Shown here piece by piece: positions 1,802 to 45,040 of a DNA stretch of 64,000 nucleotides. Position 1 is the stretch's first letter, and each line of letters starts with the position of its first letter. The DNA lies in contig MCFH01000030.1 in assembly GCA_002104945.1 (NCBI GenBank), forward strand, positions 1-64,000, given 5' to 3'. A model generated the notes under the pieces. The model was not told where the DNA came from, ran no database searches, and saw only the letters and a program-made list of their open reading frames with translations. A program made the position numbers and the translations under genes. The stretch is from Piromyces finnis finn. Lineage: Eukaryota; Fungi; Neocallimastigomycota.

Positions 1802-2592
1802 TGTAAAGATATAATATATATCTTTAGATTATTTAATAATTAATTATTAATTATTAAATAATAAATTAATATTTAGTAAAACTGATTATAAAATTTTTGA
1901 GTAAATTTTATGGAATAATTTAATAATAAATTATTTTATAATAATTCCGTTAAATTTAAATTAAGATAAATATTTAAGTTTAAGGAATAAAAGAATTTTA
2001 ATTAAATTTAAATATTTCAAATATTTTAAATAATTAAAATATTTTTCAAATACTTTTTATTTAGTTTTAGAATAGATTATACTTTTTTATTTAAATTTAG
2101 AATAGTTTAATAATTTTAACTTAGTTTTAAAAATAGATTTATTTATATTTCAATAGGAAATATATTAAGAATAGTATTGATAATATTAAATTAATTTATA
2201 GAAAATACATGGGCTTTATTCAATTTTGAGTTTACTCAAATTGAATTAAAAGTATAATGAATTAGTTTAGTTTAGTTCTGTTATTTTATTATTTAATTAA
2301 ATTAGTTTTGTTTATTTTATATTAAATATATGTTTATTTAAATAGAATAATATATTAGAATATAATTATGAAAAAATATAAATACATGTAATTTTTATTT
2401 GTTAAATCGATGTAATTGTTATTTTCAATTTTTTAATTATTAACTATTATATAGTTAATAATATTTTTAAGAGTTTAAATAAAAATGTTTTTTTTTAAAA
2501 TAAAAATTTAATGTTTTATTTTTTTATTTTTGTGTTAATAAAAATTGTTTTGTTTTAAGTATAAAATCTGTTTTAAATTTTATACTTTTACA
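1802..2592 (+). repeat. 5' LTR of A
   Basis: TGTAAAGAT...CTTTTACA. Matches 7137-7928 and, inverted, 20773-21563 and 26328-27120; by eye the differences are homopolymer lengths. Confidence 0.97.
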
Positions 2593-2603
2593 ATAACAAT
2601 TAC
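2593..2603 (+). promoter_or_regulatory. Tf1-type self-priming site of A
   Basis: ATAACAATTAC directly after the LTR is the exact 11-nt reverse complement of GTAATTGTTAT at 2412-2422. TATAAATA lies about 35 bp upstream of 2412. No TGG tRNA-type PBS. Confidence 0.85.
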
Positions 2604-2754
2604 CTTTTCTTATTAAAAAACACGTTTTATATTTAATAATAAAACAATTTTTATTTTCTGAAGTTACAACATTGGGAATTGCTACCGTAGAAAATTTGGA
2701 ACTTTTCGGAAATTTTTTCTCTTCGGAAATTTTTTTTTTTTTTGTCTACTTGAG

Positions 2755-3050
2755 TAGCCTACCTTGTGGAACTATTTATGGTGTAACTTCTGTCAGTGTA
2801 ACATTAATTTTGTGTTACCCTACTTTGTGAAATTCTAAATAAATTTTGTGAAACACTACTTTGTGGAACTATAATTGTGGAATTTTTACCTACTTGTGGA
2901 ACACTACCTTGTGAAATCCTTCCTTCGTGGAATTCTTTTGAACGAATCTCGTGGAACTTTGCTTGTGGAACTTCTACTCTGTGAAACTTTCCTTTTTATA
3001 TTGGAATTGGAATAAGTGTAACTCTACTGTATGGAACAATGAAATCTTTA
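2755..3050 (+). repeat. Short leader repeats, CTAC(C/T)TTGTG(G/A)AA-like, about 10 degenerate copies
   Basis: Repeated ctaccttgtggaact, ctactttgtgaaatt, ctactttgtggaact etc.; mirrored in B at about 25870-26165. Confidence 0.75.
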
Positions 3051-3141
3051 TATATAAAATCTATCTGTAATACTAATAGAAATATATTTATGAAATACTC
3101 TTGTTTTTAAATTGATGAAACTCTTTTAAAATTAAATTTAA

Positions 3142-4455
3142 TTATAATATACTATAAAAAGAACTCGCTCGACACCGTTTGATAGGATAGAGTCTGAGCG
3201 ACATCTTTTATACATAGTATATTATAAATTAAATTGGATATATACAATTAAAAGAGTAAATTAAATCAAAAAATTAATTGCAAAGTAAGAAAATTAAAAC
3301 TTATTTAAAAAGAAAGAAAATTAAGAAAAAGTTAATAAAATTTTAAAATTATTTAAATATATTGAGAAATAAGTGAATTAGTATGTTGATTTCACTTATT
3401 TGAATGAATTATTAATTGTTATTTTGAAATGAACTTATTATATACTTAAAAGACCTCGCTCGACACCGTTTGATAGGATAGAGTCTGAGCGACATCTTTT
3501 AGACGTAGTATATAATAATTTTAGATTTATTTAAAATACATTGAGAAATATGAAAATTAAAATTTTGATATTTATTAATTAAAAGTAGTTGAGGAATAAG
3601 TTATCTTATTGAAATAAATTTATTATATACTATAAAAGACCTCGCTCGACACCTTTTGATAGGATAGAGTCTGAGCGACATCTTTAGATATTGTATATAA
3701 TAAATTAAATTGAATATATAATTAAAACAAATTAAAATTTGATTATATAATAAGTAAATTTGAAATGAATTTATTATATACTTAAAAGACCTCGCTCGAC
3801 ACCTTTTGATAGGATAGAGTCTGAGCGACATCTTTTAGATATAGTATATAATAAATTAAAATTAAGAAATGAATTAAAATTTTACAATAAAAGTAAAAGT
3901 AATAAATGTGTAAAGTTAGTTAAATAAATAAATTATTCTTTATTATAATAAGATTTCGATGACACCTTTTTAGAGGACAGAGTCAGATCGACATCTTTTT
4001 GGGAAATAGTATATAATAAATTAAATTGAAAATACTATAAATTAATTTAACTTGAAAATTTGAAATATATAATTTTATTTAATGAAGTTAGAAAATGATT
4101 TGATATTTAAAATTACTTTTAAAATAATTTAACTTCATACTAAATAAAGAACTCGACGACACCTTTTCTTTAAAGGATAGAGTCAGGTCGACTTCTTTAA
4201 TATGAAGATACAATATAAATTCGATTAACTAACTAAATAAATATAATATATTCAAGGATTATATATTATTAATTAAATTATATAAATACAATTAAGAAGT
4301 TTATTAAATAATATATTAAAATATTTTGAAGTAATACGAAAACGAACTTAAAAATTTAATTTCATTGTAATAACTTACTTTATACTTTATAAAGAATTCG
4401 CTGACACCAGTTGATATGATGGAGTCAGGTCGACTTCTTTTATATAAAGGTGTAT
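3142..4455 (+). repeat. Array of 7 conserved stem-loop units separated by AT-rich linkers (copy A)
   Basis: Core AAAAGA(C/A)CTCGCTCGACACC(G/T)TTTGATAGGATAGAGTCTGAGCGACATCTTTT at about 3158, 3448, 3634 and 3784, with variants at 3950, 4146 and 4391; spacing 150-290 bp. Confidence 0.95.
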
Positions 4456-4982
4456 TTTATATAACTGAATATTTGACTAAATAGAAAATTCTTAATAATT
4501 AGAATATAAATTTAAAGCATTTTTAATTTGATTTGAATTTATCAACAAAAGTCAATACAAATTTAGTTATTTAAAAAGTTATACATTTATTAAAAAAAAA
4601 ATTATTTTTATATTTAGTAAATTAAGATAATTTGATTGTAATAGTTTATTAAATAATTTATTAAACAAATGATTAAGAATAAATAATTAAAATAATTTGA
4701 ATTCAATATGAGGAGGTTTTACAAATTTAGTTGTTAAATAAATTATGTTTTTTATATTTAATAAATTAAAATAAATTAATTAAATAAAGAATTTTTTATA
4801 AAGAAGTTATTGTATATCTAGTTAATAAGTTTATATTTTTATTAAGAAGTAAGTTTTATATTTAAAAGATTCAAATAACTTGAATAAATTAATATAGTAG
4901 TTTTGATTGAATAATTATAAAGTTAAATAAATATATAATAAGAAATGAGTGTAATATTTTTTATTCTTAATAATATGATGGT

Positions 4983-5060
4983 AGTGAAATCAGAGCTAGA
5001 AAATTAATCTATTCTGGATCTGTTCTTAATTTCATTTATCTGGATTTTATAAAGAATAAA
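4983..5060 (+). pseudogene. Fossil aspartic protease motif in A
   Basis: Translates SEIRARKLIYSGSVLNFIYLDF versus DEVKAKVLIDSGSDLNFIHPEF in X; the catalytic Asp is replaced by Tyr. Confidence 0.75.
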
Positions 5061-5845
5061 ATGAAAATAAAAAGAAACAAGAAAGAAGAACAATTCAGTA
5101 ATGAAATAATAAATTTGAAAATTCCAATGTTTTAAAAAGAAACTTAATGAATTACTGAATTGTGGAGGATTATAACAAAATGTTAAGTACATTTGTCCTA
5201 TGGAAAATAATGTTATCTAAATAATTTTAATTATAATAAATGTAATTTAAAAAATAAATATGATTGTAATGTATTAGTATTGTAGAATTAGAAATAGCTA
5301 TAATAGAAATTAATGAGGAATAGTTTTAGTAATAGTAACAACTTGATAGTATAATAGTTAGTATTAATAATAATTAAAAAAAAAATAGAATTAATAAATA
5401 CAACAAATGAAAAAAAAATATAATAAAATGTAATAAATAGAATAAAGTAATAAATAGAATAAGTTAATAAATATGATAAATGTAATAAATAGAATAAATT
5501 AATAAATATAATAAGTTAATAAATATGATAAATGTAATAAATATAATGAATAAAACAAATATAAATTAATGTAATATGTATAATAATTATAAGAGTTTTT
5601 AATAAATGAATAGTTTTTATGTACTTAATAAAACGAACTTTATAAAGGAAAAAAAAAAAAAAGATTTTAATCTTTATACAATTCTTTTTAATGGAAGTAT
5701 AATGAGATTGATAACTATAATTACTATATATTGATTGTAGGAAATTAAATGATATAATTATTGAAATTCATATATTCCTTTAATCAATAAATAAGATAAA
5801 TGGAGTAAAATATGTTTTTAAACTAAATTTAAATATATCAATAGC

Positions 5846-6076
5846 TTAGTAAGAATTAAATAAAGTGATGAATTTAAAATTGCTTTAATCTTTATATGGC
5901 ATTTTTAATTTATTATCATACCTTTTATTCAAAAATGTATCAGCTCTATTTTAATATTTTAAGTGATGCTTTTGATGAAGTATTTTAATTACTTTATAAT
6001 TAATAATATTTAGTACAACATTATGTATATGTTTATATCAATTCTGTGATGTTTTATTGATGATATTTAAATTTAT
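5846..6076 (+). pseudogene. Fossil reverse transcriptase remnant in A
   Basis: LVRIK*SDEFKIAL...HF*...PF and FIDDI*IY versus LVRIKEGDEYKTAF...HFE...PF and YIDDILIY in X. Confidence 0.75.
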
Positions 6077-6543
6077 GAATTCATTGTTAAATTTTTAAAA
6101 AAGAAATAATTTTATAATACCATATATTGATAAATTATAAAATAAAAGAGAATTATAAATATGCTAAAAGTATTTTAAAAACGTCTAAAAATGATAAATT
6201 TGTTAATTAAATTATAGTATTTACTTGATGACTTGATACCACTTTTGTTTATTTAATAATAAGATTAAAAAAAAATAGTGGTATAGTTAATATAATTATT
6301 GAATGATGTTTTTCCATTATTATTAATGAATGTTAATTTTTTTACAAATATTTTATTACTAAGAATTTTGTTATATTTATTTGCTTAATAATAACCTTTA
6401 AAAAAAATAAGTTCCACTTGGTTTAAAGCTTGTACAATAATAAAAAACATTTAATACTCTTTAAATGCTATTTTCTTTATAATTTTAGAATTGTCTGTTT
6501 GATATATTTAATATAAATTTTATCACAGACTTTTCATTTAAAT

Positions 6544-6582
6544 GAGAGGGTGAACGAGATATTGTTCCAATATCTCCGTTGG
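6544..6582 (+). pseudogene. Fossil integrase remnant in A
   Basis: ERVNEILFQYLRW resembles the gypsy integrase ERVNQxLEQYLR motif. Confidence 0.65.
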
Positions 6583-7136
6583 TTAATAAAATCGAATTGA
6601 TTGTTATATTGGAATCTACTTATAATATTTTATTGTAATCAATCAATCAATTTCAATTTTATACAAACTATGGATTTAATTTAAAATTTAATATTGAAAT
6701 TTCTTCAGCTAATAAATCAAAGAAAGTTGAACAGATTATTATAAGTATTAATAAAAAGTATTAAAATTGTAAAATAGAATTTTAATCATGCATAAGAAGA
6801 TTATAAAAGTCATGATGATCAAGAAGAATTGAATAAATAAAAATTTGAAACTTAAGTAAATGTTTTGTTTTGAATACTTAAATAAAAATGTTAATAGAAA
6901 ACAATTTATAAATAACCATAATCTGAATATAAAAACAAATGGATTCTTGATGATTAAGTTTTAGATAAATTATTAGAATTATGTATAAGTAACAAGAATG
7001 ATAATAAGAGTATAAATAAATTAAATACTTATATATTTTTTTAACAATGTTATGATTTAGAAAAAGTAGTAACCATTTGTTATTTAAATTTCTTCAAGAA
7101 AATAATCTCGCAGGAGCTCGACTTAAAGGGCGAGAT

Positions 7137-7928
7137 TGTAAAGATATAATATATATCTTTAGATTATTTAATAATTAATTATTAATTATTAAATAATAAA
7201 TTAATATTTAGTAAAACTGATTATAAAATTTTTGAGTAAATTTTATGGAATAATTTAATAATAAATTATTTTATAATAATTCCGTTAAATTTAAATTAAG
7301 ATAAATATTTAAGTTTAAGGAATAAAAGAATTTTAATTAAATTTAAATATTTCAAATATTTTAAATAATTAAAATATTTTTCAAATACTTTTTATTTAGT
7401 TTTAGAATAGATTATACTTTTTTATTTAAATTTAGAATAGTTTAATAATTTTAACTTAGTTTTAAAAATAGATTTATTTATATTTCAATAGGAAATATAT
7501 TAAGAATAGTATTGATAATATTAAATTAATTTATAGAAAATACATGGGCTTTATTCAATTTTGAGTTTACTCAAATTGAATTAAAAGTATAATGAATTAG
7601 TTTAGTTTAGTTCTGTTATTTTATTATTTAATTAAATTAGTTTTGTTTATTTTATATTAAATATATGTTTATTTAAATAGAATAATATATTAGAATATAA
7701 TTATGAAAAAATATAAATACATGTAATTTTTATTTGTTAAATCGATGTAATTGTTATTTTCAATTTTTTAATTATTAACTATTATATAGTTAATAATATT
7801 TTTAAGAGTTTAAATAAAAATGTTTTTTTTTTAAAATAAAAATTTAATGTTTTATTTTTTTATTTTTGTGTTAATAAAAATTGTTTTGTTTTAAGTATAA
7901 AATCTGTTTTAAATTTTATACTTTTACA
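7137..7928 (+). repeat. 3' LTR of A
   Basis: Direct repeat of 1802-2592, preceded by the purine tract AAAGGGCGAGA. Confidence 0.97.
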
Positions 7929-9090
7929 TTTTACTAAAAATTATCAAGTTGTTGATAATACTCTTTATTATAAAAAAGATGAATTATATCTTAAAGTTAT
8001 TTACAAAGATGAAGATAAAAAAGATATTATTAGTCGTGCTCATTCTGTTGGTCATGAAGGTGCTGAAAAGACCACAAATAGAATTTTAAAATCTTATTAT
8101 TGGCCTGGTATTTGGAATGATGTTAGAATGTGGGTAAAGTCCTGTAGAAAATGTCAACTTTGTAGACCTAAGCCTTTACCTAAAAATACTGAAGATAATA
8201 TAACCCCAATTGAACAACCATTTACTAGAGTCGGATTAGATATAGTTGGCCCATTACCACTTACTAAACATGGAAATTCTTATATTATTACCCTTGTTGA
8301 TTATTTCACTAAATGGGTTGAAGCTAAAGCAATTCCAAATATGAAATCAGAAGAAGTAATAAAATTTTTAATAGAAGTAATAACAAGACATGGTCCACCA
8401 GAAATAATTGTTACTGATAATGGAAGTTCATTTATTTCTGATATTACTAAAATGATGATTGATTTATATGGATCATGGGTTCATTTTGTTTCTCCTCATC
8501 ATCCACAATCTAATGGTATGATTGAGAATAGAAACAAAGAAATAGGAAAAACTTTAAGACTCTTAATTGAAAATGAATCTGAATGGGATGAATATCTACC
8601 ATCTGCATTATGGTCACTTAGAACTACCAAAAATTCAAAAACAAAGTTTAGTAGTTTCGAATTATTATATGGTAGAAGAGACACATGGCCATTAGAAATA
8701 ATGTTTCCTGATATTTATAAAGATCCTAATGAAACAGAAGAGGAATATATTTTTAGAAGATTTTTAAGGCATCAAAATTGGGTAAAACAAGCTACTGAAT
8801 ATTCTAATCATGCTAATCAATATTGGGAACATAGAATAGGTTTATCCAAAGCTTTAAAGAAGACTTATAAACCGGGTGATCATGTTATGATAAGATTAAT
8901 AGGAAGAAGTAAATTAAATCCTTATTTTTATGGTCCTTATAAAGTTGTTAATAAACAAAAATTTAATACTGTTGTACTTGAAGATCCACATACAGGAAAA
9001 CTACTTGATAGAAATGTACATATTAAAAATATTTTTCCTTACGTTCTACCAGAACAAAATTTAACTTCAAGGGACGAAGTTAATTCTTAA
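7929..9090 (+). CDS. pol: Element Y pol, 3' part (integrase: HHCC zinc finger, DDE core, GPY/F). Continues the ORF broken at 27121.
   Basis: AHSVGHEG..YYWPG..CRKCQLC..RVGLDIVGP..VTDNG..PQSNGMIENRN..YFYGPY. Frame rejoins ..GIKKYFT|KNYQVVD.. across the TTTTAC duplication. Confidence 0.95.
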
Positions 9091-9103
9091 AAGGCCGAGA
9101 AAC

Positions 9104-9894
9104 TGATAAATAATGAAATTAATAAATATAAAATTATTATTAAACCTGATTTTTAAGTTAACCCTAAAAGTAACTTAAAACAAGTTATAGTTTAATTAAG
9201 TACTTTACCAAAATTCTTAAATAAAATTAATCCTAAACACTGCATATATTTTGATTATTGAAAGAAAATAATAAACTTTAATTAATCGAGATCAAAATAT
9301 ATAACTTTTGTTAAATTAATTGTTAAATTAAATGTTTAATAACTTCGTTAGTAAATTACACTTTAAAAGTAAACAAATATAATAATTCATGTTATAAAAT
9401 AATATAATTAAACACCTTTATTAAAACATTAAAAATAATTATTACTTTAATTAATTGTAAAATAAACAACTTTTTATATTCTTTAACTTTTAATTATTTC
9501 TTTTATTGTTATTTCTAATTACTTTTATTACTTTTATTGTAAATAGTTATTAATTTTATTGTTTTAATGTAAATAGTTTAAATCTAAAAGAAAATATAAA
9601 TACATGTAAATATTCTTATTTTAATCATTATTATTATTATTAATAAAGAAATATTATAATTTTAATAATCACTTTTATAATTAATTAAATAAAATTTTAA
9701 ATATTTAAATATTAGAAAAACGAGTGTTTCTAATAAAACAATTTAGTGTTTTTAATAAAACAATTTTATTAATCTTTATAAAAACAATTTTAAATTCTAA
9801 TCCATATAACTTATATAGTTATAACTCAAGATATAATATAATAATCACTTTTTGAAGTAAAATTCAAAATTAAGATTATTATCAAATTATATCA
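9104..9894 (+). repeat. 3' LTR of Y
   Basis: TGATAAAT...TATATCA, 791 bp, reverse complement of 32804-33594, preceded by a purine tract. Confidence 0.93.
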
Positions 9895-9899
9895 TTTTT

Positions 9900-10520
9900 T
9901 GATAACGGATTGGTAGTTATATTACAACTTTTTAACTACTTCTTCTGTTATCTTATATTGTTTTATCTCGACAGCTATTGTACGAGCTTTAACAATATCT
10001 ACTAGTTTTATTAATTTATTTTAAGTTATTTTATAATTTTAATAGTTTTATTATTTTAATAATATTTATATAGAATAATAACACCAGATTTATTCTATAA
10101 AATATTATTTATTATTAACACAATAATTACAAATTAGACAAGTTTAATTTCGTTTTTATATTTTCTTTTATTTATTGTTCTTACGCTCTTTTTAACAATA
10201 ATTTTTATTATATAAAAACTTATTTTTGTCTTTTAAATATTATTATGTATTCACTAATTAATTATATTAACTATTATTAAAATTTAACTTATTATTAGTA
10301 ATCTAAGTCTTCTCATTTTCTACTAAAAAATATTATTATTCTTTATAATAAAAATTATTTTTATAATTTAACCCAATCAAATATATAAATTTATAAAATA
10401 TTTGATTTTATGTAAATTATATTTTTATAATAAACTATATAAAATTATTTAATAATTATTTTATAATAAAATTTTCTACTAATATCAAATGTATAATATA
10501 TTTATAATTATTATTTATCA
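9900..10520. mobile_element. Putative solo LTR S1
   Basis: TGATA...TATCA-bounded block, separated from neighbouring LTR ends by TTTTT and TT. Single copy in the window. Confidence 0.6.
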
Positions 10521-11939: not shown

Positions 11940-13500
11940 TGATACGTGACGAACAGAAAATACTACTTTTGGTAGAAATTCCAGGTTAATTCATATAAGG
12001 GTTAAGATAATAATAAATTAAGGAAAATATCCAACCTTTGATGATATACAAAAAATAATTGAAGAATATTTAAATATAACACAAAATGATAAATTCAATA
12101 TTTTATTATCATTGAAAATAAAAAATAATGAAAGAATAAAGCTATTTAATTATCGTGTAAGAATAAAATATAATTTATTAGATGAAAATTATAAAAAACT
12201 TTTTAATGTTAATAATTATGTTGAAATGCTAAAAAGTAGACCATATATTTATTCAAATGTTCTATTAAATGATTGTAAAACTCTTGAAGAAGCTTTTAAA
12301 GTTGCAGAGTTAGCTTCAAAAGTTGAGGAATATAATGTATTTAATAATGAATTAAATTATTCTTTTGGTTCAATTATGAATATTAATATGACAACTTTAA
12401 ATCCAAGAATTAATGATATTAATATTAATAGTAATGATGATTGTGAAAAAAATATGGATTTATCAAATGTAAATAATGAAAGAGAAAATATAATAGAAGA
12501 TGAAAATGAAGCTGATACATGTAATGAAAATTTTAATAATAAATATGAGGACATGGAATGTAATAATAATTTATTAAATTCAATAAACCTAAGTGATTGT
12601 GATGAAGATAAAATTCTAAAACTTCAAGATAAAATACTTAATAATAAAATATTAGAAGATTATAAATGTTTACGTAATAAAAAGATTAAAAAACGTTTAG
12701 AAAGCATAATTAATGGAGTTGATATTGAAGATAAAAATACCAATGATGAAAATAATATTTATAAAAATAATTATATTAGAGATACTTTAAAGAATCATTG
12801 TCAATTATTAATAGTTAATCATAAATATAATAAAACAGAAATAGATACAATGCAAAGTAAAATAAAAGAAAAATTTTCATTTAATTATGGAAATAATAGA
12901 AAGGATACCAAAATGTTAGAAAGGAACTATAGGTATAAAAGAAAAAGAAAACGATAAATACTTGTAATATAAATTTTATTTTTATTTATTATATATTTAG
13001 TATAAAAACAATATAAAAACCTATAATTTTATTAATCCTTTGTTGACTTCAAGGGACGAAGTCTCATCTAAAGTGGGGGCATCTTGATACGTGACGAACA
13101 GAAAATACTACTTTTGGTAGAAATTCCAGGTTAATTCATATAAGGGTTAAGATAATAATAAATTAATAATAACTTTAATTAATAATGAAATTAATTAATA
13201 TGAAATTAATTAAAAAAAAATATTTAATATGTACTAATATAAATATAATTAATAATTAAAAAATTAAAATGATGTTCTTGATTTTGTAATTAAGTTCCAA
13301 AGATAATAAGATATAATAAAATGAGAAATTTAGTAATAGTTTAGTAATATTAATAGTGAATAAGTAGTATATAGGAAATATAGTTATTTTAAATATGTAT
13401 TATTAATAATAAATAAATGTAAAAATACTAATTATAATATATTTTAATAAAGATAAATATTTAATAATAATAAAAGGCTTATTTTGTTTATAATTGTAAC
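11940..13500 (+). mobile_element. Deleted element T: 82-bp 5' LTR remnant, gag fragment, PPT and 3' LTR from 13085
   Basis: 11940-12021 is repeated at 13085. GACTTCAAGGGACGAAGTC hairpin and AAAGTGGGGG tract precede 13085. Right end uncertain (no clear CA). Confidence 0.75.
12022..12957 (+). CDS. gag: 5'-truncated gag-like ORF of T
   Basis: KYPTFDDIQKIIEEY..LKIKNNERIKLFNYR..TLEEAFKVAE aligns by eye with V gag HYPSLKKIVTMLEEF..MRIKKNEKVKDFNIR..TLAEAYKLAE. No CCHC knuckle. Confidence 0.7.
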   Translation, partial: GKYPTFDDIQKIIEEYLNITQNDKFNILLSLKIKNNERIKLFNYRVRIKYNLLDENYKKLFNVNNYVEMLKSRPYIYSNVLLNDCKTLEEAFKVAELASKVEEYNVFNNELNYSFGSIMNINMTTLNPRINDININSNDDCEKNMDLSNVNNERENIIEDENEADTCNENFNNKYEDMECNNNLLNSINLSDCDEDKILKLQDKILNNKILEDYKCLRNKKIKKRLESIINGVDIEDKNTNDENNIYKNNYIRDTLKNHCQLLIVNHKYNKTEIDTMQSKIKEKFSFNYGNNRKDTKMLERNYRYKRKRKR

Positions 13501-18056: not shown

Positions 18057-18795
18057 TGTAAAGATATAATATATATCTTTAAATTATTTAATAATTAATT
18101 AATAATTATTAAATAATAATTTTGATATTTTAATGAAAAATTATTTATTTATAAAATTTATTATATAAATTTTAAGGAATAATTAAATAAATATTAATTT
18201 TAAAATATCAAAATTGGAAATGAAATTTGGATAAATATTTAAATTAATGGATAATTAAATTTAAATATTTTAAATATTCAAATTAAATCTTAAAAAGTTC
18301 TTATTTAATTAAAAATAGTTTAATAACTTTAGCGTAGTTTTAAATTAGTATTTTTTAATAGTAAATATATAATAAATAGTATTATTAATATTTAATTAAT
18401 ATATAGGTAATACATGGACTGTATTCAATTTGTAGTTTACTCAAATTGAATCAAAAGTGTATTTAATTAGTTTTAGTTTAGTTTTATTATTTTATTATTT
18501 AATTAAATTAGTATTAAATTAGTTTTGTTTATTTTATATTGAATATATGTATAATTAAATAGAATAGTATATTAAAATATAATTTGTAAAAAATATAAAT
18601 ACATGTAAAATTTCATAGTTAAACGATGTAATTGTTATTGACTATAATTTAGTTAATAACTAAATAAGAACTAATAAAAAGAAAAAAGAATATAAATAAA
18701 TTTCGTTTTTGTTTTTAATTTTTTATTTTATTGTGTTTTTGTTTTATTGTAAAAAAAAAATTTTATAATCTGTTTTAAATTTTAAAACTTTTACA
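18057..18795 (+). repeat. 5' LTR of autonomous element X (diverged relative of the A/B LTR)
   Basis: Same TGTAAAGATATAATATATATCTTTA start and TTTTACA end; self-priming pair ATAACAATTAC (18796) / GTAATTGTTAT (18628). Confidence 0.92.
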
Positions 18796-19032
18796 ATAAC
18801 AATTACCTTTTTTTTATAAAACACGTTATAAAATTTTTTTTTTTTTAATAAAACATATTTAATATTTTTTTCTTACCTACCGTGTCTTAGGAAATATCTA
18901 CCTCGTCTAAAGGAATATCTACTGTGTTTTAAAGGCGATCTACCGTGTCTTAGGAAATATCTACCGCGTTTAGATTATTATTTTAGTATCATTCAAGCTT
19001 CCAACACTATTTGGTTACTGTATTTAATTTTG

Positions 19033-19110
19033 TTACTATATTTTTAAGAGCTCGTCTAACACCGTTTGATAGGATAGAGTTACGACGACATCTTAAATAA
19101 AATATTGTAA
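19033..19110 (+). other. Single copy of the array stem-loop in the leader of X
   Basis: AAGAGCTCGTCTAACACCGTTTGATAGGATAGAGTTACGACGACATCTT: same loop region as the array units, with compensatory stem changes. Confidence 0.9.
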
Positions 19111-19139
19111 AAAATTAAATAAGTAAAATATTAAGCATA

Positions 19140-20772
19140 TTGGAGGAAATCAACCAACTCTTATCTAACCTCCACTTAAACGAAAATATGGACCGTCAAG
19201 GGGCGTCTTTGAGGATAGTTAATGATCCTCCAACCTTTTCAGGAAGAAGACAAGAACTAGATGGGTTCTTGACCAGGGTTGAACTAGCCATTGAAGCCAA
19301 CCCTGATAGATTTGTTAATGATGAGGCAAGAGTTCGATTCTTAATATCTTACTTTGTCAATAGACCTTTAGAATGGGCCGCTCGTTTAAGACAAAATAAC
19401 GACGCCGTTCTAAGAAACTATGATCAGTTTATTGCTGCTCTTCGTACCAATTTCGGGGATCCGAATAATGATACGATTGTTGCAAATGGAAGACTTTGCA
19501 ACATTAAACAAAGAAAATTTGGCAAGGTGTTCGAATACATTAACGAATTCCAACGCGTTAGCCAAAATTCGAATTTTAATGAAGCAGCTAAAATATACAT
19601 GTTCACAAAGGGATTACATCCGAAAATGCGTGAACATTTAGCTGTAGTGAATCCAAATCCCTCTCAATTAGAGCGTCTTTATTCTGATGTCCTTAGTATT
19701 GAAAATCTTACTAAGAGAAATGATATCAGTGAATATTACATGACGCATCAAGACCGAAGAAATTATAACCAAAATGATCCTATGGATGTGGATTTATATA
19801 GGATCAGTTTAGGTCAAAGAAAGGTTAATTACTTCCCTCCTCATAGAAGTAATTATGACGAAAATAAAATAAATCGCACTGAGGCTAAGAAGAATGGAGT
19901 TTGCTTTACTTGTGGAAAGTCTGGACACTTTCAATTCAATTGTCCAAACAAAAAGAAACCAAAAAATGTAAAAATTATCAAGAGATGCTATTCAGAAGAC
20001 GAAGCTAGCCCTTCAATCAAGAAAATTAAAAAGGATAATCTTAATCCCAAGGGAACTTCAAACATATTCGAAATTCATAAAGGTGAAAAGAAAAATATTA
20101 TTGATTTTTATATCAAAACCAATGATATTGATGAAGTCAAAGCTAAGGTACTTATTGATTCTGGTTCCGATCTTAATTTCATCCACCCCGAGTTCGCCCG
20201 AATCAATAATATTAAACTTTCAAATATTGCTGAATCTTTCAAGGTTTCTGGTTTAGGGCAAGGTACATCTACCGTGAAAAAGGAATCCGAAAAGTGCATC
20301 CTTCGTTTGAGAAATCATTACGAAGTCATTCAATTATATGCACTTAGAATTCCTGAAGTTGATATAATTCTTGGTGTACCTTGGATTGAAGAACATTGCC
20401 CTGTTTACTACCACGATTCTTCCAAAATTGCATTTAGCTCTACATACTGTGCCAGACATTGTAATGTGGGAAGAAGAAAGAACAAGAGTAGCACAAAGGA
20501 AACCAAGAAAGAAAAAATATCATCAAGAAAAGGAAAAGAAGTTATTCAAGATGATGAAGATGATCAATCCTCTTATAGTGAACTTGGTTCATACAATCAT
20601 TATGAATACTCTTATAGCGACTTCAGTGATGATGAAGAAACTTTAAGTATTAGAGGCCGTAGAACCTCCGTCAAAACCATTAGTAACCTAGATAGTTTTA
20701 ATAAAATTAAATTTAGTAATAGTTTAAATAATGATAATAATTGTAATTTTAAATGTATATGTAATAACATTA
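19140..20772 (+). CDS. gag-pol: Element X gag-protease part of a single gag-pol ORF (first ATG at 19188), interrupted by B
   Basis: DPPTFSG gag motif, CCHC knuckle CFTCGKSGHFQFNC, protease LIDSGS. Frame rejoins RT (..CNNI|NCIDEN..) across the CATTA duplication. Confidence 0.93.
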
Positions 20773-23700
20773 TGTAAAAGTATAAAATTTAAAACAGATT
20801 TTATACTTAAAACAAAACAATTTTTATTAACACAAAAATAAAAAAATAAAACATTAAATTTTTATTTTAAAAAAAAACATTTTTATTTAAACTCTTAAAA
20901 ATATTATTAACTATATAATAGTTAATAATTAAAAAATTGAAAATAACAATTACATCGATTTAACAAATAAAAATTACATGTATTTATATTTTTTCATAAT
21001 TATATTCTAATATATTATTCTATTTAAATAAACATATATTTAATATAAAATAAACAAAACTAATTTAATTAAATAATAAAATAACAGAACTAAACTAAAC
21101 TAATTCATTATACTTTTAATTCAATTTGAGTAAACTCAAAATTGAATAAAGCCCATGTATTTTCTATAAATTAATTTAATATTATCAATACTATTCTTAA
21201 TATATTTCCTATTGAAATATAAATAAATCTATTTTTAAAACTAAGTTAAAATTATTAAACTATTCTAAATTTAAATAAAAAAGTATAATCTATTCTAAAA
21301 CTAAATAAAAAGTATTTGAAAAATATTTTAATTATTTAAAATATTTGAAATATTTAAATTTAATTAAAATTCTTTTATTCCTTAAACTTAAATATTTATC
21401 TTAATTTAAATTTAACGGAATTATTATAAAATAATTTATTATTAAATTATTCCATAAAATTTACTCAAAAATTTTATAATCAGTTTTACTAAATATTAAT
21501 TTATTATTTAATAATTAATAATTAATTATTAAATAATCTAAAGATATATATTATATCTTTACAATCTCGCCCTTTAAGTCGAGCTCCTGCGAGATTATTT
21601 TCTTGAAGAAATTTAAATAACAAATGGTTACTACTTTTTCTAAATCATAACATTGTTAAAAAAATATATAAGTATTTAATTTATTTATACTCTTATTATC
21701 ATTCTTGTTACTTATACATAATTCTAATAATTTATCTAAAACTTAATCATCAAGAATCCATTTGTTTTTATATTCAGATTATGGTTATTTATAAATTGTT
21801 TTCTATTAACATTTTTATTTAAGTATTCAAAACAAAACATTTACTTAAGTTTCAAATTTTTATTTATTCAATTCTTCTTGATCATCATGACTTTTATAAT
21901 CTTCTTATGCATGATTAAAATTCTATTTTACAATTTTAATACTTTTTATTAATACTTATAATAATCTGTTCAACTTTCTTTGATTTATTAGCTGAAGAAA
22001 TTTCAATATTAAATTTTAAATTAAATCCATAGTTTGTATAAAATTGAAATTGATTGATTGATTACAATAAAATATTATAAGTAGATTCCAATATAACAAT
22101 CAATTCGATTTTATTAACCAACGGAGATATTGGAACAATATCTCGTTCACCCTCTCATTTAAATGAAAAGTCTGTGATAAAATTTATATTAAATATATCA
22201 AACAGACAATTCTAAAATTATAAAGAAAATAGCATTTAAAGAGTATTAAATGTTTTTTATTATTGTACAAGCTTTAAACCAAGTGGAACTTATTTTTTTT
22301 AAAGGTTATTATTAAGCAAATAAATATAACAAAATTCTTAGTAATAAAATATTTGTAAAAAAATTAACATTCATTAATAATAATGGAAAAACATCATTCA
22401 ATAATTATATTAACTATACCACTATTTTTTTTTAATCTTATTATTAAATAAACAAAAGTGGTATCAAGTCATCAAGTAAATACTATAATTTAATTAACAA
22501 ATTTATCATTTTTAGACGTTTTTAAAATACTTTTAGCATATTTATAATTCTCTTTTATTTTATAATTTATCAATATATGGTATTATAAAATTATTTCTTT
22601 TTTAAAAATTTAACAATGAATTCATAAATTTAAATATCATCAATAAAACATCACAGAATTGATATAAACATATACATAATGTTGTACTAAATATTATTAA
22701 TTATAAAGTAATTAAAATACTTCATCAAAAGCATCACTTAAAATATTAAAATAGAGCTGATACATTTTTGAATAAAAGGTATGATAATAAATTAAAAATG
22801 CCATATAAAGATTAAAGCAATTTTAAATTCATCACTTTATTTAATTCTTACTAAGCTATTGATATATTTAAATTTAGTTTAAAAACATATTTTACTCCAT
22901 TTATCTTATTTATTGATTAAAGGAATATATGAATTTCAATAATTATATCATTTAATTTCCTACAATCAATATATAGTAATTATAGTTATCAATCTCATTA
23001 TACTTCCATTAAAAAGAATTGTATAAAGATTAAAATCTTTTTTTTTTTTTTCCTTTATAAAGTTCGTTTTATTAAGTACATAAAAACTATTCATTTATTA
23101 AAAACTCTTATAATTATTATACATATTACATTAATTTATATTTGTTTTATTCATTATATTTATTACATTTATCATATTTATTAACTTATTATATTTATTA
23201 ATTTATTCTATTTATTACATTTATCATATTTATTAACTTATTCTATTTATTACTTTATTCTATTTATTACATTTTATTATATTTTTTTTTCATTTGTTGT
23301 ATTTATTAATTCTATTTTTTTTTTAATTATTATTAATACTAACTATTATACTATCAAGTTGTTACTATTACTAAAACTATTCCTCATTAATTTCTATTAT
23401 AGCTATTTCTAATTCTACAATACTAATACATTACAATCATATTTATTTTTTAAATTACATTTATTATAATTAAAATTATTTAGATAACATTATTTTCCAT
23501 AGGACAAATGTACTTAACATTTTGTTATAATCCTCCACAATTCAGTAATTCATTAAGTTTCTTTTTAAAACATTGGAATTTTCAAATTTATTATTTCATT
23601 ACTGAATTGTTCTTCTTTCTTGTTTCTTTTTATTTTCATTTTATTCTTTATAAAATCCAGATAAATGAAATTAAGAACAGATCCAGAATAGATTAATTTT

Positions 23701-26700
23701 CTAGCTCTGATTTCACTACCATCATATTATTAAGAATAAAAAATATTACACTCATTTCTTATTATATATTTATTTAACTTTATAATTATTCAATCAAAAC
23801 TACTATATTAATTTATTCAAGTTATTTGAATCTTTTAAATATAAAACTTACTTCTTAATAAAAATATAAACTTATTAACTAGATATACAATAACTTCTTT
23901 ATAAAAAATTCTTTATTTAATTAATTTATTTTAATTTATTAAATATAAAAAACATAATTTATTTAACAACTAAATTTGTAAAACCTCCTCATATTGAATT
24001 CAAATTATTTTAATTATTTATTCTTAATCATTTGTTTAATAAATTATTTAATAAACTATTACAATCAAATTATCTTAATTTACTAAATATAAAAATAATT
24101 TTTTTTTTAATAAATGTATAACTTTTTAAATAACTAAATTTGTATTGACTTTTGTTGATAAATTCAAATCAAATTAAAAATGCTTTAAATTTATATTCTA
24201 ATTATTAAGAATTTTCTATTTAGTCAAATATTCAGTTATATAAAATACACCTTTATATAAAAGAAGTCAACTCCATCCTATCAACTGGTGTCAGCGAATT
24301 CTTTATAAAGTATAAAACATGTTATTACAATGAAATTAAATTATTTTTTTTTTAAGCTCGTTTTCGTATTACTTCATAATATTTTAATATATTATTTAAT
24401 AAACTTCTTAATTGTATTTATCTAATTTAATTAATAATATATAATCCTTGAATATATTTTATTTATTTAGTTAGTTAATCGAATTTATATTGTATCTTCA
24501 TATTAAAGAAGTCGACCTGACTCTATCCTTTAAAGAAAAGGTGTCATCGAATTATTTATTTAGTATAAAATTAAATTATTTTAAAAGTAATTTTAAATAT
24601 CAAATCATTTTCTAACTTCATTAAATTAAATTATATATTTCAAATTTTCAAGTTAAATTAATTTATAGTATTTTCAATTTAATTTATTATATACTATTTC
24701 CCAAAAAGATGTCGATCTGACTCTGTCCTCTAAAAAGGTGTCATCGAAATCTTATTATAATAAAGAATAATTTATTTATTTAGCTAACTTTACACATTTA
24801 TTACTTTTACTTTTATTGTAAAATTTTAATTCATTTCTTAATTTTAATTTATTATATACTATATCTAAAAGATGTCGCTCAGACTCTATCCTATCAAAAG
24901 GTGTCGAGCGAGGTCTTTTATGTATATAATAAATTCATTTCAAATTTACTTATTATATAATCAAATTTTAATTTGTTTTAATTATATATTCAATTTAATT
25001 TATTATATACAATATCTAAAGATGTCGCTCAGACTCTATCCTATCAAAAGGTGTCGAGCGAGGTCTTTTATAGTATATAATAAATTTATTTCAATAAGAT
25101 AACTTATTCCTCAACTACTTTTAATTAATAAATATCAAAATTTTAATTTTCATATTTCTCAATGTATTTTAAATAAATCTAAAATTATTATATACTACGT
25201 CTAAAAGATGTCGCTCAGACTCTATCCTATCAAAAGGTGTCGAGCGAGGTCTTTTATAATATATAATAAATATATTTCAATAAAATAACTTTTTCCAATA
25301 GGTGATATTTACATTTTAATTCACTTATTTCTCAATTTCATTTTAATTAATAAATATCAAAATTTTAATTTTCATATTTCTCAATATATTTTAAATAATT
25401 CTATAATTATTATATACCATGTTTAAAAGATGTCGCTCAGACTCTATCCTATCAAACGGTGTCGAGCGAGGTCTTTTAAGTATATAATAAGTTCATTTCA
25501 AAATAACAATTAATAATTCATTCAAATAAGTGAAATCAACATACTAATTCACTTATTTCTCAATATATTTAAATAATTTTAAAATTTTATTAACTTTTTC
25601 TTAATTTTCTTTCTTTTTAAATAAGTTTTAATTTTCTTACTTTGCAATTAATTTTTTGATTTAATTTACTCTTTTAATTGTATATATCCAATTTAATTTA
25701 TAATATACTATGTATAAAAGATGTCGCTCAGACTCTATCCTATCAAACGGTGTCGAGCGAGTTCTTTTTATAGTATATTATAATTAAATTTAATTTTAAA
25801 AGAGTTTCATCAATTTAAAAACAAGAGTATTTCATAAATATATTTCTATTAGTATTACAGATAGATTTTATATATAAAGATTTCATTGTTCCATACAGTA
25901 GAGTTACACTTATTCCAATTCCAATATAAAAAGGAAAGTTTCACAGAGTAGAAGTTCCACAAGCAAAGTTCCACGAGATTCGTTCAAAAGAATTCCACGA
26001 AGGAAGGATTTCACAAGGTAGTGTTCCACAAGTAGGTAAAAATTCCACAATTATAGTTCCACAAAGTAGTGTTTCACAAAATTTATTTAGAATTTCACAA
26101 AGTAGGGTAACACAAAATTAATGTTACACTGACAGAAGTTACACCATAAATAGTTCCACAAGGTAGGCTACTCAAGTAGACAAAAAAAAATTTCCGAAGA
26201 GAAAAAATTTCCGAAAAGTTCCAAATTTTCTACGGTAGCAATTCCCAATGTTGTAACTTCAGAAAATAAAAATTGTTTTATTATTAAATATAAAACGTGT
26301 TTTTTAATAAGAAAAGGTAATTGTTATTGTAAAAGTATAAAATTTAAAACAGATTTTATACTTAAAACAAAACAATTTTTATTAACACAAAAATAAAAAA
26401 ATAAAACATTAAATTTTTATTTTAAAAAAAAAAACATTTTTATTTAAACTCTTAAAAATATTATTAACTATATAATAGTTAATAATTAAAAAATTGAAAA
26501 TAACAATTACATCGATTTAACAAATAAAAATTACATGTATTTATATTTTTTCATAATTATATTCTAATATATTATTCTATTTAAATAAACATATATTTAA
26601 TATAAAATAAACAAAACTAATTTAATTAAATAATAAAATAACAGAACTAAACTAAACTAATTCATTATACTTTTAATTCAATTTGAGTAAACTCAAAATT

Positions 26701-27120
26701 GAATAAAGCCCATGTATTTTCTATAAATTAATTTAATATTATCAATACTATTCTTAATATATTTCCTATTGAAATATAAATAAATCTATTTTTAAAACTA
26801 AGTTAAAATTATTAAACTATTCTAAATTTAAATAAAAAAGTATAATCTATTCTAAAACTAAATAAAAAGTATTTGAAAAATATTTTAATTATTTAAAATA
26901 TTTGAAATATTTAAATTTAATTAAAATTCTTTTATTCCTTAAACTTAAATATTTATCTTAATTTAAATTTAACGGAATTATTATAAAATAATTTATTATT
27001 AAATTATTCCATAAAATTTACTCAAAAATTTTATAATCAGTTTTACTAAATATTAATTTATTATTTAATAATTAATAATTAATTATTAAATAATCTAAAG
27101 ATATATATTATATCTTTACA
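20773..27120 (-). mobile_element. Non-autonomous LTR retroelement, copy B
   Basis: Reverse complement of A; LTRs 26328-27120 (5') and 20773-21563 (3'); self-priming site 26317-26327. Confidence 0.95.
24245..25783 (-). repeat. Array of 8 stem-loop units (copy B)
   Basis: Cores at about 25716, 25425, 25203, 25018, 24867, 24703, 24505 and 24259; one more unit than A. Confidence 0.95.
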
Positions 27121-29816
27121 GTAAAATATTTTTTTATTCCTTCAGGTAGGTCTAAATCTCTTGGATTAAAATCAGACAAAATTGCATAAGCACAATTTAC
27201 TATTTCATCAGAATTTTTAGAAGGTAATCTTGAAAGGGCATCAGCAAAAACATTTTTCTTTCCTTTATCATATTTTAATTCAATTTTATATTTATTAAAT
27301 TCTTCAATCCATCTTGCATGTCTACCTTTTGATGGAATATTCTTTTTATAAAATCCCAGTAATGGTTTATGATCAGTAATTAATATGGTAGGATTTTTAT
27401 TACTTATAATATATTGACGAAATTGTAGAATTGCATAATAAATAGCTAATCCTTCAAGGTCAGTAACAGAATAATTCTTTTCTGAAGTAGATAAAGTACG
27501 ACTAATACAACAAATTGGATGTTCCAATTTGTCCCCCTCCACCTGTAAGAGTACAGCACCAATGCCATTAGTTGATGCATCAGTACGAATAATAAATTCT
27601 TTATTAAAATCAGGATAACTTAAAATAGGATCACTTAATAGACATTGTCGGATATCTTCAAAAGCATTATTACATTCTTGTGACCAAATATATTCTTGGT
27701 CTTTCTTTAATAAATTAAAAAGAGAGCTTGCTCTAATAGAAAAATTTTGAATAAACTTGCGGTAGTAACTAGCTAAACCTAGGAATGATCTTAGTTCATT
27801 AACATTTCTTGGAGCATTCCATAAGGCAATACTTTGAACTTTAGAAGGAACAGTTTTTAATCCATTAGGTGTAAGTACATGTCCTAGTACTTCTACCTTT
27901 TCTTGAAAGAATTTACATTTTTGTAAATTAAGAGAAAGATTATATTTAGATAATATTTCAAAAACTTGTTGTAAATGATAAAGATGTTCTTCAGGTGATT
28001 TAGAATAAACAACAATATCATCAATATAAACAAAAAGACATTTACCAATTAATGGTAAGAGAATCCTATTCATTTCTCGCTGGAAAGTAGCGGGAGCATT
28101 AGTTAAACCAAATGGCATTACTTTAAAATTATAATTACCAAATTTTGTTGTAAAAGCAGTTTTTTCAATATCATTTGGATTCATAGGAATTTGATGATAG
28201 CCAGAATATAAATCTAAAGCAGAAAATATTTTTGCACCATTAACAGAAGAAATTAATTCATCAATAAAAGGAAGTGCATAAGAATCCTTAATGGTAATTT
28301 CATTAAGTCTTCTATAATCAATACACATTCTCCATTTACCATTTTTCTTTTGTACAAGCAGAACTGGAAATGACCATGGAGAGTGAGAAGGAGTAATTAA
28401 ACCTTTATCAAGTAATGAAAGAATTTCACTTTTTAAAATATCAGCATGTTCCTTAGATAATTTATAAGGTTTTAATTTTATTGGTTTATTAGTAGTAGTA
28501 ATTATAGAATGAGGCTCTAGATCCGCAGTAGTTAATTGAGACATTGATGTAGCCATACAATTTTTATATTTATTTATAATATGTTCAAATTTTGATTTAA
28601 TATTATCAGGTGTTGAATTTAAAATTTCTTTTAATGTATCTTGAAATTCTTGGTTTTCTTCTTTTGAAATAATTATAGAATTCATCAAAGGAATATCATT
28701 AATATCATTATCATTACTATTGATAATATTTGTAATTTTCTTTAAACCTTTTTTTGTTTTTTGATATATATAATCATCATCAGGGTCAATAAATAAACGG
28801 TATTTCTTTTGAATACCTCTTCCAAAAATTATATCAAATTATGGGTTACTTTGTTCTATAATATAAAATTTTTCTAAAATAGTACAACAATTATTAATAT
28901 TTATTTTTAAAGTAGTAAAAATATTTGTAGGAACAGTAGTACCATTAGCAATAGTTATATTTTGTTCCTCATCACTTTTTTCAATATTTTTATTAGATAA
29001 TTTATTAAAACCATTTGTAGTAATGATATTGACGTTTGCGCCAGTATCATAAAGAATTTTTAAATATTTTCCATCTATATCACCAATTATTAATGGAATA
29101 TTAGAGTTATTAAAGGAGTACATCACTTTTTCAATTTTAGGTTTACATCCTTGTTCTAATTCTTTTCTAAGTGATGGACTAGCAGAAAGTAATTGGGAAA
29201 GACTTATTTTTGGATATAAATTATTTGCTTCTTTAATTATACTAAATTTATCTTTGGTTTTTAACATTTGTATTTCTGTCATATTTCTTTTTGTGGTTAC
29301 TTTGGTTTTGACAGAATTTTTCTTTACTTTTACATCACTTGTTTCATTATTATTTTTAAAAGTTTCTTCATTGGTAGAATCATTAGAGTTATTAATTTCA
29401 ATAGGTTGGATATGTTCTTTTGTATTAGTAACTTCTTCTAAAGGTATTTCATTTGTATTATTTTGTTCTTCTTCACTTTCTATTTCTATTTCTTCATTTG
29501 GGGTTTCTTCCATAACTTCATCTTTATCTTCGCTAATTTTTCTTCTACGAGTATCTCTAATAGCCTTCTTTTGTTGTTTTAAATTCCTAATATTAGGTTG
29601 GTTAAGTATTGAGGGTTTGACAATACTTTTATTATTTGGTGATATTTTATTTTTATCTAATGTTTTAACATTTATTTTCTTCTTTTGAGCCGCATTAATA
29701 GAATAATTATTTTCATTAGAGATATTGGAATTTATTTGTGCTTCTTGTGTATTTTGTGAACTATTTGCAATTTTAGTTTTTATGGGAGATTGCTTACTCC
29801 CATTATTTAGTTTAAA
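27121..29816 (-). pseudogene. pol: Element Y pol (protease, RT, RNase H) with in-frame TAA at 28839-28841, interrupted at 27121 by B
   Basis: LYDTGA protease; YIDDIVVY RT; RTDASTNG RNase H. Track ORFs 28839-29513 and 27108-28688 are in the same frame. Confidence 0.92.
29782..29816 (-). promoter_or_regulatory. Putative -1 ribosomal frameshift signal of Y
   Basis: TTTAAAC slippery heptamer at the gag stop, 6-nt spacer, then stem ATGGGAG/CTCCCAT; pol is in the -1 frame. Confidence 0.8.
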
Positions 29817-35260: not shown

Positions 35261-35264
35261 AAAA

Positions 35265-37894: not shown

Positions 37895-38781
37895 AAAATG
37901 CTACGGTTCAAATAAGATATCACAAAACACTTGAATAGTTATAAAAATAAAAATTTATTTAATTTTAATTTTTATTCATTTAATTTATTTTTTGATTTTT
38001 CAATTTTTAAAAATTTTCTCAAAAATCCTCGTACTTTTTCCAACTATCCATTATTTGAAATTTAATGGTTTTGGATAGCTAAGGATTTAAATTGATTTCA
38101 TTCATAATATATGGATCATTCACTATAACATATATTAATTAAATCCTTAATATATATTATGAATAATCTCTTAATATTTGAATAGAAAAATTTTTAATTT
38201 ATAATTAATAAAATTTTAATTTATGATATGTGTAACATTTTTGCATATCATATATTATATATTTAATTATGACATATAATAAAATTATATTATTCAATTA
38301 ATTATGCCCTTTTTTAGACATAAATAATAATTTTTCTGTCGAGGTATCTTCTGTTTTGTGTGTAACAGTTGCCTCTTTTAGTAAAAATTATAATTAAATT
38401 CTATGTCATAATTTCAAATTATAAAATATTATACAATAAAGTTAATTAATAAAATAAACCTTAAATAATAATAAAATTCCTATAACTATTTTAATAATAA
38501 AATTTTGTAAAATTTATAAGTATAAAATATTATAAGTAATTATACTAATACTAATAATAAAGGTCTTAAATAACTATATACAAATAATATAACTATATAA
38601 TAAAAATATGAATAATTACTAGAAAAATGTATAAAAATTATATATTATAATTTTTATATTTTAAAAATAGAGTTAAACACTAGTAAGGAATATAAATAGT
38701 TGAAGGTTAATTCCTAAAATTCTAGCTAATTCAACTATTTATGTTCATTCCTTAACAGAATGCCCTTCGTTAAAACTCAAG

Positions 38782-45031: not shown

Positions 45032-45040
45032 AAATTTAAT

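Follow-up and report, generated by a model that had tools for sequence, protein, structure and literature searches.

A leader hairpin of putatively self-priming Ty3/gypsy retrotransposons, multiplied in a non-coding derivative: a candidate packaging signal in the fungus Piromyces finnis

Positions 3139–4461 of a 64,000-nt stretch of Piromyces finnis DNA (contig MCFH01000030.1, positions 1–64,000; hereafter the window) carry seven tandem hairpins of ~60–90 nt each that share one architecture and lie in the leader of a gene-less long terminal repeat (LTR) retroelement, a large retrotransposon derivative (LARD; element A). Autonomous Ty3/gypsy relatives carry the same hairpin once, upstream of gag. 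With moderate confidence, we interpret the hairpin as a cis-acting RNA signal in the leader of a self-priming Ty3/gypsy clade, most likely a Gag-recognition or packaging signal that a parasitic element has multiplied. An earlier reading of this DNA (the original prediction) had offered three functions for the array—a multimerized Gag-binding or packaging signal, a protein sponge, and a polycistronic Dicer substrate—and the first of these appears to fit best.

The window has a GC content of 11–35% per kb, and the array stands out as seven GC-richer cores in AT-rich DNA (starts at 3171, 3462, 3648, 3798, 3961, 4158, and 4403; core-to-core spacing of 291, 186, 150, 163, 197, and 245 bp). A loose pattern, GACACC-N(8-22)-GAGTC, matched the window 14 times against 0.01 expected, and a 34-nt core pattern matched nine times against 0 expected; the seven cores at 150–290-bp spacing described in the original prediction are thus borne out. 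The same prediction held that each core folds into one long imperfect stem-loop. This was so for six of the seven units (−20 to −31 kcal/mol; z −3.2 to −7.1 relative to dinucleotide shuffles), whereas unit 5, with its weak outer stem, folded poorly in an 89-nt window (z −0.97). All of the sub-helices that had been named were found (the outer stem, AAAAGA/TCTTTT, TCGCTC/GAGCGA, GAC/GTC, and the CC/GG cap), as were all of the quoted stem variants in which pairing is kept. Two covariance models (CMs) were built, R1 from the best units and R2 from 30 diverse units. R2 matched exactly 16 units in the window, the number given originally: seven in element A, eight in an inverted sister copy (element B), and one in an autonomous relative (F1). 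Each of the 16 lies on the sense strand of its own element, as do 45 of 45 R2 matches overall; the reverse complement never matched.

The resemblance to a CRISPR array that had been remarked upon is superficial. The repeats are 66–98% alike, the spacers are of non-uniform length (63–204 bp) and partly homologous products of tandem duplication, and the whole lies in the interior of a eukaryotic LTR element. At gathering scores, Rfam held no family for the hairpin, and only two tRNAs elsewhere in the window passed; a permissive search of 2600–4600 returned best matches at E 0.6–6 and 15–25 bits, against thresholds of 40–100. Identities as a miniature inverted-repeat transposable element, a small nucleolar RNA, or a ribozyme were dropped, given the lack of any Rfam match at gathering score and the confinement of the units to one element clade. 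The hairpin appears to represent an uncatalogued structured RNA family.

A common plan emerged from 39 distinct sequences of ~14 types. From base to tip, it consists of a lower A/U stem, a small internal loop, a 5–6-bp stem, and a 3-bp GAC/GUC helix; above this helix come a single unpaired 5′ A, the apical stem-loop, a 5-nt 3′ bulge of the form A-N-N-G-N, and a 1–2-nt bulge. The asymmetric 1×5 internal loop and its flanking helix are kept in sequence, the helix reading AAC/GUU in F1 and AAC/GUU or GAC/GUU in some families, and the bulge occurring as AUAGA, AACGC, AUCGA, or AGAGA. The apical part is CC-loop-GG in F1, in the LARD, and in a second autonomous family, F2, and a 4–5-bp CUGY(A)/(U)RCAG helix in families T3–T7. 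Its 22 nt are identical in the window copy of F1, in F2, and in LARD units 1–2, and differ at one position in LARD units 3–4 and in one F1 subfamily. None of the apical loops (GUUUGAUA, UUUU, AUA, AUUA, and ACA) is self-complementary.

Conservation of the hairpin exceeded that of its surroundings. Among 29 distinct F1 leaders, variability per column was 0.014–0.03 in the hairpin, compared with 0.15–0.40 in the rest of the leader and 0.03–0.07 in gag; nowhere else in the F1 leader region is variability as low, and gag too varies more than the hairpin. Autonomous elements evidently keep their single hairpin under strong purifying selection. Within the LARD array, cores are 82% alike in pairwise comparison, and spacers 53%, compared with 51% after shuffling.

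Every family of the clade that was sampled has the hairpin on the gag-sense strand, 70–260 nt upstream of the gag ATG, with Gag identity to F1 of only 50–56% across these families. The extra R1 match in the window (19027–19114) falls within F1, whose ORF (open reading frame) in the window encodes Ty3_capsid, zf-CCHC, and RVP_2 domains and assigns this relative to the Ty3/gypsy elements; the order reverse transcriptase (RT), RNase H, integrase (IN) was seen only in neighboring elements of other families. The genome (a 56-Mb assembly of 232 contigs, ~15% GC) was searched with F1 Gag, and upstream regions were taken from 30 F1 loci (Gag 90–100% identical) and from 40 loci of distant families, F2 and the T families, whose Gag is 47–56% identical to that of F1 (53% for F2). 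The model matched one site per locus, on the gag strand, at 15 of 15 F1 loci searched and at 35 of 40 F2/T-family loci, and a looser pattern found the hairpin in three of the five distant-family loci that lacked a model match. In all families, the hairpin sits in the 5′ leader downstream from the primer-binding site (PBS), the position that characterizes a packaging signal. F1 has ~35 copies in the genome, some of those outside the window having single ORFs of 1626–1635 aa; F2 has ~5, two of them with intact ORFs of 1590–1599 aa. Across the genome search, hairpin units were never found dispersed outside this gypsy clade, and two other gypsy lineages in the window (37898–44897 and 27108–31400) have an ordinary tRNA-type PBS and no such hairpin.

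Self-priming is suggested by the sequence that adjoins the LTR. The 11 nt after the LTR of element A are the exact reverse complement of an LTR stretch 170 nt upstream, and this self-primer/PBS sequence occurs eight times in the window where 0.26 occurrences are expected, each time at an LTR or PBS position. Every hairpin-bearing gypsy family (F1, F2, and T3–T7) has a corresponding exact complement of 11–13 nt, with the LTR site 132–170 nt upstream (pairs at 2412–2422/2593–2603 and 18628–18638/18796–18806 in the window, and at loci L041, L051, L063, L067, and L069–L074); a tRNA-type PBS was absent from the hairpin-bearing gypsy families examined. Tf1 and Tj1 have a PBS that pairs with part of their 5′ LTR, a segment regarded as the 5′ end of the mRNA (PMC4600332). 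The whole hairpin-bearing gypsy clade probably uses Tf1-like self-priming. Upstream of the hairpins, the LARD leader holds a second repeated motif, YGTGDAAY, in 11 copies, with a counterpart in copy B at 25944–26159 on the minus strand. The F2 leader has four copies (L063:980–1160), and F1 has a related 21-nt repeat, present 4.7 times (18877–18973). This motif could constitute a second protein-binding array.

Element A has the organization of a LARD. Its two LTRs are near identical and have TG..CA ends, a putative PBS (2593–2603) and a polypurine tract (7125–7136) adjoin them, and the internal domain (2593–7136) contains no ORF of at least 90 aa. When the gag-pol proteins of its relatives were compared with element A by tblastn, colinear plus-strand matches were obtained to protease (PR; E 2e-3), RT (8e-3), and IN (4e-9), which identify the element as a decayed non-coding derivative and the plus strand as its sense strand. 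The LTRs, PBS, polypurine tract, and colinear PR/RT/IN remnants thereby confirm the predicted location of the array, the leader of a non-coding LTR retroelement. Persistence of the structure through coding decay, also predicted, is equally apparent: only remnants at E 2e-3 to 4e-9 are left of the coding sequence, and the spacers have decayed while the hairpins were kept.

Amplification of this family is recent. The genome contains at least 40 LTR copies that are 98–100% identical, and roughly 30 arrays among the unit-1 model matches listed. The canonical genomic array has eight units spaced by 291, 217, 186, 150, 163, 197, and 253 bp; near-identical copies carry 5 to 8 units, a spread that points to ongoing unequal recombination, and one extra unit in copy B is the product of a 222-bp tandem duplication. 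Diverged, older LARD lineages (contigs C101 and C160) likewise carry arrays, and among the copies sampled, no LARD lineage was seen with young, identical LTR pairs but no hairpins. In its LTR and early leader, the LARD shares 85% identity with F2 and 73% with F1, and LARD units 5–7 have F2-like stems. The 98–100% LTR identity across at least 40 copies, together with the 85% identity to F2, whose ORFs are intact, suggests indirectly that the LARD is mobilized in trans by an autonomous partner. The one candidate for an autonomous version with the LARD LTR, the sole long LTR pair (C46, 11.7 kb apart), turned out to be a LARD with a foreign element nested in unit 7. That nested element (C46, 740000–749999; positions 3912–10000) is a gypsy element with a 1530-aa ORF and its own 500-bp LTRs, inserted within the hairpin unit in opposite orientation.

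Pairing is maintained through sequence change. Canonical pairs fill 86.5% of pair cells in the CM alignment, compared with 77.3% in shuffled alignments (0/500) and at most 52% with partners slid, and changes on both sides occur in 9 of 17 pairs. A hand structural alignment of 14 types has 237 of 245 cells canonical and compensatory types in 10 of 20 pairs; RNAalifold recovered three helices from this hand alignment, which is open to bias. Individual events include G:C to A:U in the upper helix of F1; in LARD units 1–4, 5, and 6, a change of C:G to A:U and another of U:A to C:G by way of U.G; two lower-stem changes that separate F from T types, G:C to A:U and A:U to C:G; and the series C:G, U.G, U:A in the outer stem of F1. 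A wobble intermediate is preserved in unit 6 of copy B, where U.G stands between the U:A of unit 5 and the C:G of unit 6 in copy A. The evidence for the hairpin structure is good; formal tests of covariation are suggestive. The covarying stems of the original prediction accordingly stand as regards kept pairing and compensatory types, with mixed formal statistics; along with the conservation and the single copy upstream of gag in the relatives, they support its broader view of a selected, structured module. Feature coordinates are collected in Table 1.

Table 1. Features of element A, its inverted sister copy, and the autonomous relative F1 in the window (CM, covariance model; MFE, minimum free energy; R1 and R2, the two models described in the text)
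Feature	Position	Strand	Evidence
LTR retroelement A (LARD), 6.1 kb	1802..7928	+	direct repeats 1802/7137; LTR alignment, TG..CA ends
5′ LTR, 791 bp	1802..2592	+	four-way LTR alignment
Putative self-primer GTAATTGTTAT in LTR, inferred start of R	2412..2422	+	exact reverse complement of 11 nt after LTR
Primer-binding site, Tf1-like self-priming type (inferred)	2593..2603	+	complementarity
11 YGTGDAAY (CTACYTTGTGGAAC-like) short repeats, leader	2765..2990	+	11 in 225 nt vs. 10 in rest of + strand
Hairpin unit 1	3139..3228	+	CM R1 97.6 bits; MFE −29 kcal/mol, z −5.7
Hairpin unit 2	3432..3519	+	CM R1 109.6 bits; z −5.2
Hairpin unit 3	3617..3704	+	CM R1 102.1 bits; z −6.7
Hairpin unit 4	3768..3855	+	CM R1 115.5 bits; z −7.1
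Hairpin unit 5, diverged, F2-like stem TCGAT/ATCGA	3930..4020	+	CM R1 51.6, R2 54.8 bits; z −0.97
Hairpin unit 6, TCGAC/GTCGA, longer apical loop	4131..4207	+	CM R1 37.1, R2 59.2 bits; z −4.1
Hairpin unit 7, most degenerate	4372..4461	+	CM R1 30.1, R2 57.3 bits; z −3.2
Decayed pol remnants: PR ~4977–5054, RT ~5724–5884, IN ~6585–6761	4977..6761	+	tblastn
Polypurine tract AAAGGGCGAGAT, abuts 3′ LTR	7125..7136	+	read from sequence
3′ LTR	7137..7928	+	LTR alignment
Autonomous relative F1, 5′ part	18058..20772	+	sequence; cut by LARD copy B at 20773
F1 LTR	18058..18795	+	sequence
F1 PBS	18796..18806	+	sequence
F1 21-nt repeats	18877..18973	+	sequence
F1 single hairpin	19027..19114	+	CM R1 63.1, R2 72.4 bits
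F1 gag-PR ORF	from ATG 19188	+	Pfam Ty3_capsid, zf-CCHC, RVP_2
Sister LARD copy B, 99% identical, inverted	20773..27120	−	inverted repeats; LTR alignment
Copy B hairpin array, 8 units	24239..25786	−	pattern and CM matches

We favor a packaging-type signal because the hairpin occupies the leader, is retained in a parasite, and exposes conserved purines. Under the mechanism we propose, the hairpin would act in the sense genomic transcript, between the PBS and the gag start codon, where helper Gag, through its CCHC nucleocapsid knuckle, would recognize the RNA and recruit it into virus-like particles. The gene-less LARD would have retained just the parts required in cis (LTRs, self-primer and PBS, leader repeats, hairpin, and polypurine tract), and unequal recombination would have expanded its hairpin to 7–8 tandem copies. 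Eight sites could give the parasite RNA a higher avidity for borrowed Gag than the one-site RNA of its helper, so that multiplicity would raise packaging. Roughly 30 LARD arrays occur among the matches listed, vs. ~5 copies of F2, the closest helper family. A bolder proposal, which we hold only tentatively, is that the conversion of a single Gag-recognition hairpin into an eight-fold array, with the second leader motif tripled, made the LARD a super-competitor for capsid protein that outnumbers its closest helper several-fold; the hairpin would then constitute a new RNA family as well as the first packaging determinant to be defined for early-diverging fungal retroelements.

Several observations weigh against a packaging signal acting as RNA. 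All of the evidence comes from one genome. The LARD was found in four sequencing runs from three studies, only as contigs of unknown kind; one of these runs from LTR position ~311 on into the leader and may be of DNA or read-through origin. Two measures of covariation that are robust to kinship were not above shuffles (double-change pairs, 9 vs. 8.2; pair types, 20 vs. 23.2). On automatic alignments, RNAalifold returned only an 8-pair local stem (MAFFT) or nothing (CM alignment), because the register differs from one unit class to another. The antisense strand folds as stably as the sense strand (mean difference 0.24 kcal/mol, p 0.5), and the strand assignment therefore rests on context and the asymmetric loops. 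In viral and metagenome contigs, the apical-loop pattern had 0 matches, a blank that carries low weight, and the T-type pattern had three viral matches, all by chance in GC-rich contigs, and 0 in metagenomes. A host RNA-binding protein as ligand, moreover, fits the same data nearly as well.

Such a host protein, binding the hairpin in place of Gag, could govern nuclear export, stability, or localization of the intron-less RNA, in the manner of the constitutive transport element of simian type D retroviruses, with more copies giving more effect. The long stem with its sequence-conserved asymmetric internal loop suits this account, as does retention in a gene-less element, and a constant host ligand would explain well why F1 and F2 have the same apical sequence though their Gag proteins are 53% identical. 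The apical stem-loop of T3–T7 differs within the same genome, however, so that a single host ligand would read the internal loop only, and no known export element matches in Rfam; on balance, we judge a host ligand unlikely. A protein sponge, for its part, fits the same data as a Gag-binding signal. A role in reverse transcription or RNA dimerization (self-primer positioning, strand transfer, or genome pairing), with the array a by-product of keeping at least one copy, would accord with the leader position downstream of a self-priming PBS, and the leaders of Ty1 and retroviruses combine such functions. We nevertheless consider it improbable: the hairpin is 230–540 nt from the PBS, eight copies bring no obvious gain for priming, and with no self-complementary loop there is no kissing-loop dimerization site, which makes dimerization in particular unlikely.

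The stability of the hairpin and its placement 70–260 nt before the gag ATG would also befit control of gag translation, as a scanning barrier, shunt, or switch; the LARD array would then be a neutral tandem repeat homogenized by gene conversion and of recent origin, with which its 5–8 copies among near-identical elements agree. Because the LARD has no gag and yet retained and multiplied the hairpin, the array cannot be explained by an effect on gag translation; its old units 5–7 keep the architecture while spacer similarity has fallen to chance, GC-rich cores endure in a ~15% GC genome, and diverged LARD lineages keep arrays, all of which leaves this combination improbable as well. Arrays of ~60–90-nt imperfect hairpins, with a weak, sub-threshold likeness to microRNA precursor models, could instead be cut by Dicer, as a polycistronic precursor of small RNAs that would benefit or restrain the element family, and RNA interference is reported to work in anaerobic gut fungi (PMC5796279). 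Intact autonomous elements, however, conserve the hairpin more than gag, whereas a trigger aimed at its own element would not be expected to be so preserved; conservation falls on the internal loop and the adjoining short helix of GAC/GUC type, and not on a 21-nt arm of a duplex; and the Rfam matches lie far below threshold (E 0.6–6), so that we find this explanation very improbable. Least credible is a feature acting as DNA, whether as palindromic protein-binding sites, an enhancer or insulator array, or miniature inverted-repeat insertions: the units are palindromic and both strands fold about equally, but they never spread beyond the element clade, their orientation relative to gag is fixed, and complementarity is kept through stem changes with G.U-type intermediates that a dimeric DNA-binding site would not need.

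Other observations concern the surroundings of the array. In one sequencing run of unknown kind (X1), contig depth reached ~5600 over 2602–2801, compared with 100–450 over most of the element; this peak reflects either a leader segment common to many more elements or an abundant short RNA. The two LARD copies have exchanged flanks: TAATG lies at the 5′ end of A (1797–1801) and the 3′ end of B (20768–20772), TTTTAC flanks the 3′ end of A (7929–7934) and the 5′ end of B (27121–27126), and pol fragments at 27108–28688 (minus strand) and 7929–9090 (plus strand) form one interrupted gene when read together. These swapped target-site duplications and the interrupted pol gene indicate that the ~12.8-kb segment between A and B was inverted by recombination between the two copies. 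The inverted segment holds a 281-aa ORF (12112–12957) with no Pfam match. Farther along, the unrelated gypsy element at 37898–44897 is intact, with a 1172-aa pol ORF and a tRNA-type PBS; it and a solo LTR from its family immediately adjoin two tRNA genes (features at 35263–36086, 37898–44897, and 44950–45113 in all), which suggests tRNA-gene-targeted integration by this family.

Apart from those of yeast Ty elements and retroviruses, packaging signals of LTR retrotransposons are ill defined, and how non-autonomous elements beat their helpers has so far been mostly inferred. At ~60 nt and with an internal loop that is conserved, the candidate described here is compact and easily mutated. It comes, moreover, as a natural dose series, with one hairpin in helpers and 5–8 in the parasite, and in several divergent variants in one genome, which makes the idea of competition by avidity directly testable.

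The original prediction knew of no LTR element of this architecture. That assessment is fair for the multimerization, but conserved leader signals in parasitic LTR elements are an established principle, seen in BARE2 and in LARDs. Among repeated leader motifs, Drosophila gypsy carries a tandem array of Su(Hw)-binding sites, a short motif with AT-rich spacers. Its repeated motif, AT-rich spacers, and position in the transcribed leader of a Ty3/gypsy element resemble the present array; unlike the hairpins, the Su(Hw) sites are recognized in double-stranded DNA, and their array has more in common with the YGTGDAAY repeats (2765–2990). The constitutive transport element of Mason-Pfizer monkey virus is a long hairpin whose conserved internal loops bind protein and which is stronger in multiple copies in reporters. 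Length and a conserved internal loop are common to both hairpins, whereas the viral element lies in the 3′ region, has a host export factor as ligand and two symmetric loops, and shows no sequence similarity. Retroviral Psi consists of stem-loops with exposed purines that Gag recognizes through its zinc-knuckle nucleocapsid portion, and its location between the PBS and gag is that of our hairpin; Psi is normally a single composite domain, in contrast to the eight repeats here, and there is no sequence or Rfam relation.

The closest parallels are retrotransposons themselves. The putative PBS described here would pair with a site within the 5′ LTR, as in Tf1 and Tj1, a likeness of sequence complementarity; the described Tf1 primer structure, unlike the present leader, is without the hairpin. 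LARDs of the Triticeae are portrayed (PMC7215508, citing Kalendar 2004) as having long LTRs, a non-coding interior, trans-complementation, and a conserved predicted RNA structure. The element studied here likewise has long LTRs, a non-coding internal domain, and conserved predicted RNA structure, and would depend on trans-complementation too; nothing in that description presents the Triticeae domain as one helper-leader hairpin repeated in tandem, and the two have no sequence relation. BARE2 keeps the packaging and dimerization signals of BARE1, enters BARE1 particles, and outnumbers BARE1 (PMC3735527). BARE2 is a Copia-type element that encodes pol and has single-copy signals, whereas the LARD is of Ty3/gypsy type, fully non-coding, and has its candidate signal multiplied 7–8 times. 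As BARE2 does with the cis signals of its helper, it keeps LTR ends, PBS, leader motifs, and hairpin, and it too outnumbers its closest helper family.

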